Assembly: GCA_904063045.1 (NCBI GenBank)
Contig: CAJFCJ010000018.1
Coordinates: 62,001-126,000 of the forward strand
Length of the DNA: 64,000 nucleotides
Source of the DNA: Dimorphilus gyrociliatus
Lineage: Eukaryota > Animalia > Annelida
Direction: 5' to 3'
Below are positions 2,551 through 54,393 of this stretch, one piece after another. Within the stretch, counting starts at the first letter, position 1. Each line of letters begins with the position of its first letter. The notes beneath the pieces are model-generated. The model was not told the origin of the DNA, ran no database searches, and saw only the letters and a program-made list of their open reading frames with translations. Both the position numbers and the translations under genes were made by a program.

Positions 2551-5500
2551 ATGACAAGTAGCGACGATACAGATGACGAAATAGCATATAGGTACAGAAT
2601 GGAACTAGAAACGAAGAAAAAAGAGGCAAAAAATTTAATAAAAGATAATAATAAAGTAAGGGAATTTTTTTACTGTTTTAACATGCTTCTTAACAATAGA
2701 AAGAAATGATTGTCCTGAAATATAGTCTAAGCTTGAAATCTGAGAGAAAAATTTAGGATCTTTCTTATTTATTTCAATGCATAAGTCAATTTCAATGAGA
2801 GAAAGAGAGAAAGAGAAATTGAAAATAAGTGATAAAAATATTTAATCTAATTAACTTAACATTCTTAATAGGATTCTAAAGGACTATTCAAAGGTTTTCC
2901 AAAGTCTATACTCTATATTTGCGGAAATGAATTCTGTGAAAGATTTTCTTATTATGGATTAAGAGGTAGTGTTCTTAAGAATATAAAGATCTTCCTTTCT
3001 AATGGAGGATAAACCTTAAAATTTTCCTAATTTTTTTTTATTATAAATAATAAATATAGCTATTTTGGTAATCTACTTGAAAAATTTTTTACACCTAACT
3101 GAGAATAGTGCAACTGCAATATATCATACATTCGTCATGGTTTGTTACTTTTCTCCCCTCTTTGGTGCCATGCTAGCTGATGGATGGTTAGGAAAATATA
3201 GGTAAATGTGGAAAGATGTTCTAAAAATATACTTCTATTAAGGGTTATTAATCTTTTAGAACTATATTATATATGTCACTTTTCTATGGAATTGGAAATG
3301 CTGTTCTTGCCCTTACAGCTATTCCTCCCTCAGAAATGTAAGTTATCAAAATGAGATGATATTATTATAGATAAATATTATAAATTATTCATTTCAACCT
3401 TAAAAAGTCCTGGTCCGATAGTGGCATTATTAATTATCGGTGTAGGAACGGGAGGTATAAAACCTTGTGTATCGGCATTTGGAGGAGATCAGTTTAGCGA
3501 ATCCCAACAACAACAAAGACAATTATATTTCTCCATCTTTTACTTTTTGATAAATGCGGGAAGTTTCATAAGCATATTTCTTACGCCCATCTTACGAGGT
3601 TGGTTTCTTCCTAACTATCTTCTCTTACATACTCATTAAAACCGAATTAAATTTCTCATGATTTTATTTATTTTTACAATCTTCTTTGTTTATAGCCAAC
3701 GTTTCGTGTTTTGGTAAAGACTGTTACCTTTTGGCTTTCGGTTTGCCCGCAATTCTAATGTTTTTATCAATAAGTGAGTTACAACACTCTAATGTTAAAT
3801 GAAAAACAATTTTAATACAATAGGGATAAAATATTCATTCATGTTTATTTAATTCTCTTTTATTAGTACTGTTTTTTGCTGGGGGTAATTATTATAAAAA
3901 ATTCCCACCATCTGGAAATGTTATTGGCCAATTAATAAGTATAAGTTGGGTTAGTTTGTTATAAAATATGACATTTATTCATTTTATATAATATAATTTT
4001 TATAAATCAATCTCTTTTATTGTCTTTTTTCCCTCATTCCCCCTTTTCTCTATAGAGGGGCTTTCGTAATCGAATTCGAGGGAAACAGGAAGGAAAGAAG
4101 CATTGGTTAGACTATGCCGAAGACAAATACGAGGTTGTTTGAAAATAATAATGAAATATATGATTATTTATTTAATAAAATACTTTACAGCCAGAGCTAA
4201 TTTCCGATGTTAAAGCTGTGTTGAGAGTGGGATTTTTATTTCTACCCTTACCCATTTTCTGGGCTCTATACGATCAACAAGGATCGCGATGGACATTCCA
4301 GGCGGCCAGAATGAATTTAAGCTTAGGTCCTTTAGGCAATTTAAAACCTGATCAAATCCAAGCAATCAATGCGTCGTTAATACTAATGTTTATTCCATTT
4401 TTTGATTTGGTTATATATCCATTGCTGGATAAATTAAAGATTCCAAATAGGTTTGACATAATTTTAACTAATTTTTTTTAGTAATCGTAATATTATATTA
4501 ATGAAATATTGATAGACCTCTTCAAAGAATGTGCAGCGGTATGTTGTTGGCCGCTGTAGCCTTTTTCGCAGCTGGATTCCTGGAGATCCACTTACAGGTA
4601 TTTATCTCATTATATCCAGTAATAAGCTTTTTGAAATAACCTCTCCGAATAACCTTTGCTCTCTATCTCTCCCTTTAATTATTAGAAATCATTACCGCCA
4701 AAGATTCCAAACAACCAAACAAATGTCAGATTTATCAATACAGCACCCTGCTCAATTTCAATAAACGGGATTTCTAGTGAACCTTTCAATATGACTGGAG
4801 GAATCAATAATGTAAGCTTCTTAGCAAAAAAGATGGTAAAGGTTTATCATAAATGAAAAGTTTATACTTTTTTCATTATATAAAGCTAAGAGACGCCTTC
4901 CTACCAGCTGGGAATTATTCAATGATTATCGAAGCGGCTCCAGCATGTAAAGCTGCGGAATCCCGATTTTCAAGTATGTTTGAGGGAGGCGAAAGATATT
5001 ATGTTATTATTGGAAAAAACGATTCTCAATCATTAGCAAAATCGGTAGGGATTATGGAATTTTCCATCCAACCGAAACACTTGTGTTAACAAATTACTTT
5101 TTTTTTTACCGCAAAAGTTTCTTCAATCAAAAGAAAAACCAAAAGACGGAGGTGCTGTTGTAAAGTAATATAGTCAATTTTTACTTGTTTACCTTACATC
5201 AATAGTTTATTTAACCTTGATATTTTATTAATTAAATAGCAAAAGCTGTTTGATTAGGGTGTAAGTGTAATATTATTAACGAATACTTTTATTCTATATA
5301 GGATAATCGTGTTTGATTTTAAAGTTAATCCCGAAACGGAGGTAATATTAGAAAAAAACTCCCAAATGGATCAGTTTAACGTGACTGCTTTTGAGCCTTC
5401 ACCCAATAGGGAAATCCAGCCCGGAGAGTTAGTTGTTTATATTCATTTATATAAGGTTATCAATTTAAGGTAGAAAGCTATATTTTTTATTTCCTTAGGC

Positions 5501-6542
5501 ATAAAATAAGAATTTATGGTCTAGACAACGAGACAATTATTATTCCAGAAAGTATAAACCTTCGAAATGGGGGTGCTTACACAATTCTACTATTTAGAAG
5601 TATGCTGAATGAATCAGATAACAAGGTGAGAGATCAATATATACATGTGAAATATTCTAAATATGTAAAACATCACAGCCATGCTTTAGGCATTGATTAG
5701 ATTTCAGTTCTTTTTTATTTCTTTAATTTTTTTTGTACATTGATCATAACGCGTCAATATCTGTATGCTTTCTGATCAGAAACTAGAATGCGAAGTAATT
5801 ACTCTCTGTGTAGATTGTATATAAATTTATATATATATATATACTGTAATTAATAATATAGTAATATTCCTCTATGCCATACTGCACTTATTAATTGAAA
5901 AAGATTATAATTATAATTATTTGCATATTGGAAATTTTCTAATTTTCCTGAGTAAAGAAATTATATAGAAATTTTTAATTAACATTTTAGAATCATTGAT
6001 AAAAGCTTCTATTTATATACAATTTATATATACTTTCATATTTATATAGTATTTTTTCTTCACTCTCTTTTTTCAATATAGATGATAGCTGAAGTTCACA
6101 CTGACTTGGAGCCAAATGAGTTATCAATTGGGTGGCAAGTACCACAATACGTTATCATAACTGCGGCTGAAATATTATTCTCTATTACGGGATTATCTTT
6201 CGCCTATTCTCAAGTTAGTTTTTAAAGCATTATTAAAACTTTATTGAAAATACTCCTTTCCTTTTCTCTCTCTCTCGTCCCATACTACAGGCGCCATCTA
6301 GCATGAAATCAGTCGTTCAAGCTCTCTGGCTGTCCGCAACTGCATTTGGAAACTTGATTGTAACCATTGTAGCCGAAGGAAAATTTTTTGAGAATCAAGC
6401 TGTTGAATTTTTCTTTTTTGCCTTTGTGATGATTTTTGTAACCTTATTATTTGGTACACTTGCATATTTTTACAAATATGTGTCTTACGATCAAATTGAA
6501 AGTGAACGTCATGAACTTTTGGATTCAACGAAAGGCGATTAA
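2551..6542 (+). CDS. SLC15A1/2-like: Proton-coupled oligopeptide transporter, PepT1/PepT2 (SLC15A1/2)-like, with large extracellular domain
   Basis: Exon 2551-2655, then 2872-2965 with ICGNEFCERFSYYGLR (ExxER motif). Later exons give LADGWLGKY, GTGGIKPCVSAFGGDQF (PTR2 signature), LPIFWALYDQQGSRWTFQA, WQVPQYVIITAAEILFSITGLSFAYSQ|APSSMKSVVQALWL. Stop at 6540-6542. Extracellular-domain exons lie at about 4680-5630. Confidence 0.95.
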
Positions 6543-49270: not shown

Positions 49271-51046
49271 TCAAGAGTTCGCCATTTCTCTTTCAATAGT
49301 TGCTCCTAACCAATCAGGAAAAGCAGATGTAATTCTTTCAATTATGTTGTTAACTTGGAAGCATAAACCATGTATTTGTTTATCCCAACTAGGTAGTGGA
49401 TCACTCGCTGAGATTAAATAACAAATAATAATTAACAACTTTATTGGTCTCTAAGGAAATTCAACTTACATCCAAAGTAAACAATCATTGCAATTTGATC
49501 AATGTGCCCATTCATTCGACCTTCGCTGATCATCTGAGAAGCTATTTTTTCAGCTCGTAAAGGATCTGATACGAAAGAAAAGTTAAACTTGAATATTATT
49601 TTATATTTTTACTAACCAATTTCTAACAGAGCTCCCAGCTCTTGAAAAGAAATATTATTATATAACTTTGAGGCAGAGAGAAGATTATGCTCAATTATAG
49701 CTCTTTCTAAGATAGTCCCCCCATCAGATGCAACAGCTTTCTGATGTGGTAATAGAAGTTTCTCAAATTCTGTTACGTCTGTTGTTTTGATAATATGTTC
49801 CAGATGCATTTTTTCTAGAATGGATATAAAAGTAAACATTTGACACCTTTCATCTTTGAATAAAGTGGCCAACATTCTTGATCGCACTTGTCCAGCCTTT
49901 GCCAAAATTGTACAAACTATTGCATTCCTCAAAGCCCTCATTCTTTCTGGTTCATCAACTTCTGTCTTATAAGACAATTCATTATACTTTTGGGCGGCTT
50001 CAATAAATTTTCGACGATAATCCAAAACTTTTGCATAGCATGCTTTATAATAAATTTGTAAGTCATTCCTACTGCTGTCTGTGACTAACATAGATGCTCT
50101 CTTGATATATTGTTCGGCTCTACCAGGATCTTCATCTTCCAAATATAATCGTGCAATTTTCAAGTAAGTTTCTAATTTGTAATCGTTAGAATATTGCTTT
50201 TGAGCAGTTTCTAGTGGTATTCCGACTAAGGTTGTAGCAGCACTCTTCCATTCTCCACATTTTTCGTAAACTTCAGCTAAGTATTGTCGAATATTAGCAA
50301 CTTGTTCTTCGAATGAGATTACTCGTGGATTTAATCTTTCCAGAGTATAGCGAGATACAGTGATTACGTTGTCGTCTGGTAATTTTTTTAATTCCGTACA
50401 AAATTCAGATAGTAGTTGTCTAGAAATCACCAAACTGACATTCTCGTTGACCACTGAAAAAAAAAGTTGCCGTTAAGTCAAGCTCGAATAAAGTTTAGAA
50501 AGCAGCTATTTCAAAAAAAGGAAAATTTTTGATAACTATAAATTTTATCTGAGTATTTACAGGCATCAACAAAGTCTTTAAGGCCTTCAGTACGATTTTT
50601 TTCTTCGTTCTTTAGAATTGATGAGAGTATGGCTTTAAATCTAATTTCGAAGATATGATGATTAATAGTTAAAAAAGATATTAGCGTTTAATAATGTTTA
50701 CCTATCCGTTTTCTCCTTATGAGAAGAGGAACTCGACGAATTTGATAACGTATGGAGTAGTTGTTTCCAGTTTTTCTGTCAATAAAAATTAAAGGATAAA
50801 TAAATTATATTTCTGTACTGTTGGAATTTGATACGAGAATTATAGAGGTTCTGCAAATAATCGGGCTTTTTTTGAGATGGGTTTTCAAGTTGATAGTTAC
50901 ATTTTACATGTTATATTACTGCTAAACTCTCAAATAAAGAATTAGGTAGAAAAGTACATTTTATGTAATGTCAATCGATGTATTCATTAGAAATATAAGC
51001 AAATAGAAAATTATCTAGCTGAACTTACCGAATCCATGTCCGCCAT
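49271..51046 (-). CDS. COPS4: COP9 signalosome subunit 4
   Basis: Exon 51046-51029 (MADMDS). [121 protein letters not shown]. Stop at 49273-49271. Confidence 0.98.
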
Positions 51047-51270
51047 ATTATCTCTTGATCGGTTACCGAAGTAAAACACACTTACCGGTTCAACGTACCA
51101 GTTTTTTTTAAAGAAAATAAAAAGATTTTTCATTATATTCAGTTGAAAGTTTTAGAAATAGGTTATACTTTCGAAGAATGATATAATATGAAAATTCAAT
51201 TTAATAAAATTTGAGGGTGTGATATTATTTTAGCACTCGTAACGTTTGATAATTTAAAATCGATAGGCTC

Positions 51271-51287
51271 GAACTGAAACCGAAACT
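51271..51287 (+). promoter_or_regulatory. ISRE / IRF-binding element upstream of the RIG-I-like gene
   Basis: GAACTGAAACCGAAACT contains an exact GAAANNGAAACT core (51276-51287), 39 nt before the RLR ATG. Confidence 0.6.
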
Positions 51288-51326
51288 TGGAATTTTTTAT
51301 CTTTTATCTATTAGTAACAGACGACT

Positions 51327-54300
51327 ATGGAAAATTTTTCTGATCGAGAATTTCAATTATTTTTGCTAAAAATTCAAAATTTATTGAAAAAACAAAGTAC
51401 AGAAATATTGGCTGAATTTAAGGAACATGTAGCAAGTATTACAGAGGAGGATACAGATAATCTAGACCCTAGACAGTTGATCAAGCTTTTAAAAGACACA
51501 CAACTTATCCTTAAGACTAATGTTGAAATACTAAGAGAAATTTTTATTGGAATAAATCTGGAACATTTATATAAAAATGTCATCGCCCAAGTTAAATCTC
51601 CAAGTACTGAAGGTGTGTTTGTGCTCCTAGGTAACTAATTTATAAGTATAGTTTTCCACAGAACCACCTCCACTAAAAACCTTTCGGAACGCGGCAAAGG
51701 AAATTTTATGGGATTATGTTGAAAGTGATCCGCAACAAATACGCCATGAAACAATCAAGAAGGATCATGATGTACCTTCAGAAAGGACACATTTTACTGA
51801 AGAGGAATCAAGTGAGCATGAATCAACCGAGAGTACATCACACTCTAACGATATCGTGTTAAGAAATTATCAACTTGAATTGGCCGAAGAAGGATTATCT
51901 GGTGAAAATACTATTATATGCGCTCCTACTGGTTCTGGCAAGACCTATACTGCTGCCCATATATGTTCAGAGAGATCACGCAAAATTACAAGTACAAAAC
52001 ATAACGGCGTAAGAATTGTATTTGTTGTTCCATTAAAAGCTTTGAAAGACCAGCAAAGAAAAGCTTTTCGTGCATACTTTGAAAATGTTCATTCTGTCGG
52101 GCCTGATAACACTCTGAGGGAACTTTTAAAGTCTCCAAATAAAGCTGCTGTCGTAGTTATGTTAACCGCTCAGAATTTAGTTAATGCTATAGAAGAACCG
52201 AGCAGTTCTAACAGAAAAGTGGCACTAGAGGAAATAGACATTTTAGTTATGGATGAATGTCATCATACTAAAAAAAACCATCCTTATGCTAAAATTATGC
52301 ATCACTGTATGCAAAATACTGTGGCTAACAAGCAGATTCCTCAGCTGATTGGACTCTCGGCTTCTCTGGGTGCTGGGAGTAAAGGTGAAGAGTTTGTGAC
52401 TTCTGAAGAGTCCATAACTTTCAATCATTACGTAAATTTATGTGCATTTTATCATGCCCATAAAATTTCGTACGTTGTGAACTATAGACAAGAAATAGAA
52501 CAATTAATTAATAAATCAGAAGAATTAATAAAACCTGTACCTGCACGAAAACAAGGAGACTATATATCTGTTCTTCGAGAAATAAGTGAGAGAATAATGA
52601 AAGATGAGGATGCTCATTTTGCCGAAATCGGTTTTGATATAACATCCTCACAATTTGAAAATTGGATTGTTGATCAAAAAAACAAAGCTATTTCTAATGG
52701 TGAAGCAGTTACGAAAGATGCCTGCTTTTATTTACAACACCTACGAAAGGCAGTAATGTTTTATGAAGATTTTCAAATAGAGGATTCTTACTTATATTTG
52801 AACGAAATATTTAGTAATTGTCATGATGTTACATCACCCAATCGTACAAAATGGATAAGAGTCTTTCATGAGTATATTGACAGAATAGACATTGCACGCC
52901 ATCAAGATTTACTTGAAAATAATCAACTTGTAGAAATTCTCATAAAAGAAATTAAGGAAATTTACAATAAAAATCCAAAATCCCAAGGTAAATGTAGTTC
53001 TGTATATAAACTCTATAGTCAGATCAACACCTTAGTAATCTACTACTATGAGTAATAATTATTTTATAGCTATATTTTAAAATTAGCTGTGTAGTTTAAT
53101 TCAAAATTCTTATATCAGGATTAATCCTCTGTCGAACTGTCTATGGAACAAGAGCCCTTCATAGAATAATTACAGAACAGATGCCTAATTACAAAGTTTC
53201 TCAGATATTTGGGACAAATCAATGCGACGGAAAGATTCAGATGACGGAAAAGTCACAACAACGAATTTTAAATTGTTTTCGAGACGGCAAACTACAAATA
53301 TTAGTAGGAACGGATATTCTACAAGAAGCCCATGATCTACCTGCTTGTAATTTCGTTATTCGTTATAATTTTGTTAGTAATGAAATTGGATCTGTTCAGG
53401 TTGTATTCCTTTAGAGTTTTAAAACTTTCTATTTAAGATTAAATTTCCACTCTTTAAAAAAAATATTTAGGCTCAAGGCAGAGCAAGAGCAAAGGATAGC
53501 CAGTGCGTATTAATCGTTCGTGAAGACTCTAATGAGTTAATGCGTGAGCAGCGAAATCGAATACGTGAAATTAAAATGATTGAAACTTTGGATGAAATAA
53601 ATAGCGATCCAAGTCGTATTCGTATGTTAGTTGACAAAGCTATAGTATGTTTGTAAATTAGTTAAAACAAAGTAATTAAAATACATGTATATTTTCAACA
53701 GAATGAAAATATAGAAGAGGAAATTAGAAGATCCAGAGTTACGCGTGAAGATTCTGAAGTTGATTTATCAACGTTTGTCTTCTGTTGTGGATCTTGCGCG
53801 AGAGGTGATCATTTAAAACATTAATTAGTAAGAGACAGTAAAACAGTTTATATATTTTAGAATTGTTTACTGCTGATCAACTAAGAAAGAATGGTCAACA
53901 ATACATTTGCATAGATCCAGAATTTCCCAGCAAAATAGATATTACTAACTACTCCACTCCTATGCCATTTAGTAGGGATGACCATGAAGGTAAAAAACTG
54001 AAAATGTTATGTTGATTCACTTTGAGTAATATTTGGGGTATTTAACAAACTTTTTGTTTATCTATTATCACGTGAAAAGATAGCAAAACTCAAATAATAT
54101 ACAACTAAAATGGATCGATTAAAGACTTTCTTTAGAACCTAGTTTAGATCTATTGTTTTCTTTTTTTCATAGGTAAATTCTTCTGCAAGGCTGCCGAGTG
54201 TTCGGATCGAAAAGAGAAGAGAGATAGTTTGGGAACTTTAATTAGATATAAATGCCCTTATCCACGTGAAATAGGATATGTCATGTCTATAAGAGCTTTA

Positions 54301-54393
54301 AGTATGAGGAAAGTAGATACTGCAAGACCTTCCCCACTGAAAAAATGGACAAAACTTCTATTTCCTGAAAATTGTATTATAAGAGATGAATAA
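51327..54393 (+). CDS. RIG-I-like receptor DExD/H helicase with single N-terminal death-fold (DED-like) domain and zinc-binding CTD
   Basis: Intact and phase-consistent: exon 1 51327-51612, exon 2 from 51662. Walker A APTGSGKT, Walker B MDECHH, motif III GLSAS, Hel2 and QAQGRAR, CTD FCCGSC...FFCKAAEC...KKW. Stop at 54391-54393. Confidence 0.92.

Follow-up and report, generated by a model that had tools for sequence, protein, structure and literature searches.

The window analyzed here, a 64,000-nucleotide stretch of the genome of the tiny annelid Dimorphilus gyrociliatus, contains a seven-exon gene on the plus strand at positions 51327-54393, as read from the letters together with a public transcript. 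Its parts, and the elements immediately upstream of it, are listed below in window positions.

51094..51326, plus strand: 5′ untranslated stretch, covered by the transcript contig without a splice, with an in-frame TAA at 51315
51267..51291, plus strand: ISRE-like element, core GAAACCGAAAC at 51276, 40-60 nt 5′ of the ATG
51327..51612, plus strand: exon 1, with the start codon and a predicted single, divergent death effector domain (DED; residues 1-95)
51662..52987, plus strand: exon 2, with a linker rich in Ser and Glu, then helicase domain 1 with its motifs I, II and III, and the insertion-domain region
53119..53399, plus strand: exon 3, with helicase domain 2 (Helicase_C, motifs IV-V)
53471..53644, plus strand: exon 4, with motif VI (QGRAR) and the stretch running up to the C-terminal domain
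53702..53804, plus strand: exon 5, with the start of the RIG-I-type C-terminal domain and its first zinc pair (CxxC)
53861..53989, plus strand: exon 6, with the middle part of the C-terminal domain
54173..54393, plus strand: exon 7, with the second zinc pair (Cx4C), the KKW motif and the stop codon

We found the gene to be expressed, and its model is backed by a spliced contig and an upstream in-frame stop. All six GT..AG junctions were present in one spliced contig of 3278 nt from a transcript assembly (X1, 2017), the sole public run containing the stretch, confirming the seven-exon model. From 51094 onwards, the contig continued without a splice through all of exon 1, which ends in intron phase 1; as an assembled contig, it cannot fix the true transcript start. 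The in-frame TAA at 51315 lies four codons 5′ of the ATG, and the reading frames that begin at two upstream ATGs are short, at 2 and 8 codons. Head-to-head with the gene, on the minus strand, lies a CSN4/PCI-type gene (49612-51046), the two start codons being ~280 bp apart, and this gene pair is conserved in a related species (locus L031:3686-5340). Given the unspliced contig, the stop at 51315 and the proximity of the CSN4-type start, there is no room for, nor any trace of, a further CARD exon upstream, which the sequence-only reading had named as one of the findings that would speak against its proposal.

The public counterpart of the gene is DgyrCDS11011 (CAD5122599.1, A0A7I8W4J9; P0021 in our set), a protein of 840 amino acids that carries no functional name. 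Its first 95 residues are those of exon 1, starting at the same Met. Where exon 3 joins exon 4 (53399-53402 / 53471), its annotated donor lies three bases further on and adds one Val, which found no support in the transcript contig. The exons were searched singly and not joined, and DgyrCDS11011 was used as the full-length reference.

Downstream of exon 1, the sequence identifies the protein as a RIG-I-like receptor (RLR), with the acidic linker, intact SF2 helicase and zinc-binding C-terminal domain that had been read from the letters. Helicase motifs I (GSGKT), II (DECH), III (SAS) and VI (QGRAR) are all present, and in DgyrCDS11011 Pfam recognized DEAD/ResIII, with DEAD at 75.9 bits, and Helicase_C at 51.2 bits. 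Residues 162-779 aligned in one stretch to solved structures of RIG-I, LGP2 and MDA5 with E-values of 1e-57 to 1e-50, and the match to Dicer structures (E 1e-23) was confined to helicase domain 1. The insertion domain Hel2i (PF18119), which is present in the relatives, was not reported by Pfam here, and its region falls within the continuous match to the PDB structures. RIG-I_C-RD (PF11648) was found at residues 717-831 at a sub-threshold score (19.9 bits versus a cut-off of 25.6 bits, E 9e-4); upon alignment with relatives, this domain was seen to keep the four zinc cysteines (CxxC and Cx4C) and the KKW motif. The Ser/Glu-rich linker that connects the exon-1 domain to the helicase measures ~65 amino acids.

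The closest relatives of residues 150-840 were RLRs that bear a Pfam-recognized DED (E 1e-82 to 1e-68), from the annelid Owenia, the echinoderms Acanthaster, Patiria and Amphiura, and three other assemblies. Each of the eight related DED-RLRs carried exactly one N-terminal DED (31.6-71.6 bits). In an unrooted tree built from the helicase and C-terminal domain only, with the N-terminal domains removed beforehand, the query and all eight DED-RLRs fell into one clade of 12 rows with UFBoot/SH-aLRT support of 100/100, separate from the CARD-RLRs and from nematode helicases. The terminal branch of the query measured 2.08 versus a median of 0.41, i.e., five times the median, which is a caveat on its placement. 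Among the clade members are the echinoderm proteins P0032, P0035 and P0042 and the Owenia proteins P0033 and P0037. With echinoderms and annelids both represented in the clade, the fusion of a DED to the helicase is, as far as an unrooted tree can tell, probably older than the "lophotrochozoan-specific" label of Yao et al. 2022 implies, in agreement with Tassia et al. 2021.

Exon 1 encodes an all-helical module of 95 amino acids that we assign, from its sequence and predicted structure, to the DEDs and not to the CARDs, with five lines of evidence in agreement. DED (PF01335) was the only Pfam family matched by exon 1, over nearly its full length and with an E-value of 0.05, below the gathering cut-off (14.3 versus 35.9 bits). 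The first exon of the syntenic orthologue matched the same family at E 3.4e-4 (21.2 bits), that of a third orthologue gave no Pfam DED match, and no match to CARD, Death or PYRIN (PYD) was obtained at E≤1 for exon 1 or the syntenic orthologue. In language-model features, the three closest named clusters were all DED clusters (0.89, 172-175 shared features). Upon modeling the domain with AF2 on an alignment of the three orthologous first exons, we obtained a confident structure (pLDDT 89.5, pTM 0.78) with helices at residues 6-21, 25-39, 48-57, 67-75 and 79-90, in which helix 3 is not clearly formed (residues 40-47); a single-sequence model with long merged helices (pLDDT 66.7) was discarded. 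DEDs made up nearly the whole list of the best 50 Foldseek matches of the model, which also included some PYDs but not a single CARD. The E-values (≥0.9) are weak, as expected for a domain that is short and helical. VIA-align placed nine DEDs on top (from PEA-15, caspase-8, MC159, vFLIP and FADD), with Z-scores of 10.0-11.7 and rmsd values of 2.1-3.1 Å over 78-86 aligned residues, followed by PYDs (Z 8-9.9), death domains (6-8) and CARDs (6-7), where the margin of DEDs over PYDs is just 1-2 Z units and helical bundles generally score high. For residues 1-95, the structural comparison among DED, CARD and death domain that the sequence-only reading had called for thus came out on the side of the DED.

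Profile comparisons pointed the same way. Because a word search gave only FADD and one orthologue, we took the comparison DEDs from the sister RLRs and from the FADD and caspase-8 of the same genome. With hhalign, the three-orthologue profile matched the sister-RLR DEDs at 94.4% probability (E 9e-8, 78 columns), versus 0.17% against CARD-type RLRs in their first CARD region. Against the genome's own FADD/caspase-8 DEDs it reached 63% (E 7e-5) in a partial alignment, and the sister-RLR DEDs themselves matched these at 98.7%. A two-sequence profile run against PDB sequences retrieved no DED; its only matches, at E≥0.7, were one protein from yeast and one designed protein. Besides the gene itself, the profile search of the whole library brought up nothing but the first exons of two orthologues and a pair of proteins with internal repeats (P0024 and P0025), the pair being treated as spurious. 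Overall, Pfam, the AF2/VIA-align comparison, hhalign and the tree bear out the single death-fold module, DED rather than CARD, that had been proposed for this exon. We hence consider the gene to be a divergent, fast-evolving member of the DED-RLR orthogroup of annelids, brachiopods and echinoderms, with a probability of about 0.8.

Judged by its sequence, this is the most divergent DED-RLR copy that we have seen. In helix 6, the RxDL motif that contributes to the charge triad reads LEHL here, as had been noticed from the letters and is seen in the alignment with orthologues and DED-RLRs; it reads KEKI and REKI in the orthologues. The hydrophobic K-F-L patch of helix 2 is lost as well, although the L031 orthologue retains it as KFL. 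Between D. gyrociliatus and the related species, identity is 22% in the DED, 52% in the helicase exon and 59% in FADD, and a search of the genome found no paralogue of the exon-1 domain. Because both hallmark DED motifs are lost, a coupling to FADD or caspase-8 is something that we still only infer. The fast change of the DED is as compatible with the change or loss of a partner as with an arms race, and together with the motif loss it raises the question whether the partner has changed. The N-terminal domain may, for instance, be derived from a DED and no longer engage FADD or caspase-8, leaving the protein as an LGP2-like regulator or RNA-binding factor, or as a receptor with a new, lineage-specific partner. 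The loss of both motifs, the low identity of the domain relative to helicase and FADD, the very long branch and the lack of a paralogue in the genome would all suit such a history. Against it, three orthologues that have diverged still yield a high-confidence model of the fold, and the domain resides on a conserved first exon with the same intron phase in both species. Furthermore, RxDL is also variable among the DED-RLRs that Pfam does recognize, and its loss alone is therefore no proof of a loss of function. We regard such a loss or change of partner as unlikely, although it is a prospect to be taken seriously.

That the domain instead belongs to another death-fold subfamily, PYD-like or new, is improbable. 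The PYDs of AIM2 and NLRP proteins come close to the DEDs in Z-score (8-9.9), the model has no clear helix 3 at residues 40-47, the Pfam DED score is sub-threshold, and the two-sequence profile found no DED among PDB sequences; yet neither orthologue has a PYD, Death or CARD match in Pfam at E≤1, the hhalign probability against true DEDs is 94%, and all of the nearest helicase relatives have Pfam DEDs at the same position. A canonical CARD-type RLR, with a divergent CARD in exon 1 or CARD exons upstream, is barely credible, as no point was found in its support and it is opposed by the 0.17% hhalign probability against RLR CARDs, the lowest rank of CARDs among the death folds in VIA-align, the contig that is unspliced 5′ of the ATG with its in-frame stop at 51315, the start of the CSN4-like gene just ~280 bp away on the other strand, and the public annotation that begins at the same Met.

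RLRs with death-fold domains other than CARDs have been reported from amphioxus. The sequence-only reading had gone further and ranked the present gene as the best candidate for an undescribed system, a claim that does not hold: Tassia et al. 2021 (MBE 38:5806, PMC8662601) described a maximally supported orthology group of RLRs with N-terminal DEDs, including one from Patiria miniata, and proposed DED-dependent apoptosis for them, and Yao et al. 2022 (IJMS 23:3415, PMC8998645) described DED-type RLRs ("L2") in Lingula anatina and Eisenia. RLRs are absent from placozoans (PMC6321704), which, together with a protein record that names Dimorphilus, led us to reject a placozoan origin of the stretch. 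Both the architecture and the hypothesis are thus already known, and what is new is an unusually divergent member in D. gyrociliatus. Yao et al. 2022 (PMC8998645) do not mention Dimorphilus in their main text, a full-text literature search with the species name and RIG-I returned no relevant paper, and in the literature searched we found no test of the published apoptosis hypothesis (PMC8662601). Because its DED and its C-terminal domain both score below the Pfam cut-offs, standard domain scans miss DgyrCDS11011 as a DED-type RLR; a protein that had no name so far now appears as a DED-type putative sensor of viral RNA.

Like the other members of the orthogroup, the protein combines one N-terminal DED, a linker, an RLR helicase and a RIG-I-type C-terminal domain, the latter with the Cx4C second zinc pair of the clade. 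It differs from them in the sub-cut-off Pfam scores of its DED and C-terminal domain, in the loss of RxDL and K-F-L, and in its size, as its linker is the shortest (~65 amino acids versus ~130-600) and the protein, at 840 amino acids, is among the shortest in the group. With vertebrate RIG-I and MDA5 it shares the helicase motifs, a region of the size of the insertion domain and the zinc-binding C-terminal domain; unlike them, it has no tandem CARDs, and therefore the CARD-filament mechanism of MAVS is not directly applicable. MDA5-type C-terminal domains, moreover, have a Cx2C second pair where this protein has Cx4C. LGP2 (DHX58) has a similar core of helicase and C-terminal domain, and echinoderm relatives of our gene are automatically named DHX58, but LGP2 lacks an N-terminal death-fold domain. 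The likeness to FADD lies in the lone DED, which could upon clustering nucleate the tandem-DED filaments of caspase-8, and the exon-1 model matched FADD DED structures at Z 10.0-10.2. In contrast to FADD, the motifs typical of FADD are lost in the exon-1 DED, and clustering is predicted to occur via a fused RNA-binding helicase rather than via a receptor-bound death domain.

At stake is the published idea that DED-RLRs tie RNA sensing directly to cell death of the caspase-8 type. In such a route, the helicase and C-terminal domain would bind viral double-stranded RNA, oligomerization on the RNA would cluster the DEDs, and the clustered DEDs would nucleate assembly, by DED-DED contacts, with FADD, with the genome's own caspase-8-like protease (which has tandem DEDs), or with both, so that caspases could be activated without a CARD adaptor of the MAVS type. 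As a whole, from double-stranded RNA to caspase activation, we hold this route to be possible, at a little short of even odds. The survey for FADD and caspase-8 that had been suggested along with the proposal found both: the genome encodes one FADD, with a DED and a death domain in 202 amino acids, and one clear tandem-DED caspase (caspase-8-like). Going by sequence matches, the only recognizable homotypic partners for the DED-RLR in this genome are DED proteins. A predicted complex between the exon-1 DED and the FADD DED, run without alignments or controls, scored 0.00 and counts neither way. Our searches found only two RLR genes in D. gyrociliatus and, combined with the small genome, the one FADD and the one clear tandem-DED caspase that they saw, this makes it a simple animal for testing the link between DED-RLRs and caspase-8-type death.

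The ISRE-like element upstream of the gene has a near-identical counterpart in the related species (L031:5548-5576), situated about 40-85 nt 5′ of the ATG in both, and the remaining intergenic DNA aligns poorly between the two. As the element lies inside the contig beginning at 51094, it may be located 3′ of the transcript start. The genome has at least three IRF genes that score over the Pfam cut-off, and the conserved element suggests control by IRF factors. On the broadest reading, an IRF/ISRE-controlled DED-RLR would nucleate FADD/caspase-8 filaments in a MAVS-independent route from RNA to apoptosis that has existed since the protostome-deuterostome ancestor, a date that follows from the annelid and echinoderm members of the clade; taken together, we consider this chain doubtful. 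The DED-RLR has been retained in a miniaturized genome of 78 Mb.

The second RLR gene of D. gyrociliatus lies on contig 8 (L030, G000:C8:633500-643499, minus strand, about 2600-5900) and has a canonical RIG-I_C-RD of 54 bits. Its two N-terminal exons matched no Pfam family, showed no similarity to the exon-1 DED and gave no useful lead in the language-model atlas. A CARD route may serve this second RLR, as the genome contains CARD_2-type proteins that include a MAVS-like candidate. The latter gene (L019, G000:C7:3761712-3764942, minus strand) carries two to three tandem CARD matches (CARD 43.7 bits, CARD_2 36.3 bits), and a hydrophobic, putative membrane helix is encoded by an ORF further downstream in the same orientation; with exon joins that are predicted, it is a possible MAVS-like adaptor. 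Another locus (L011, G000:C1:2783830-2787084), in the minus-strand ORFs at 943-1776 and 657-878, encodes an N-terminal CARD of the CARD_2 type (46 bits) together with a Bcl-2 domain of sub-threshold score (28.4 bits) and, at the C terminus, a hydrophobic tail; such a tail-anchored mix of CARD and Bcl-2 is unusual.
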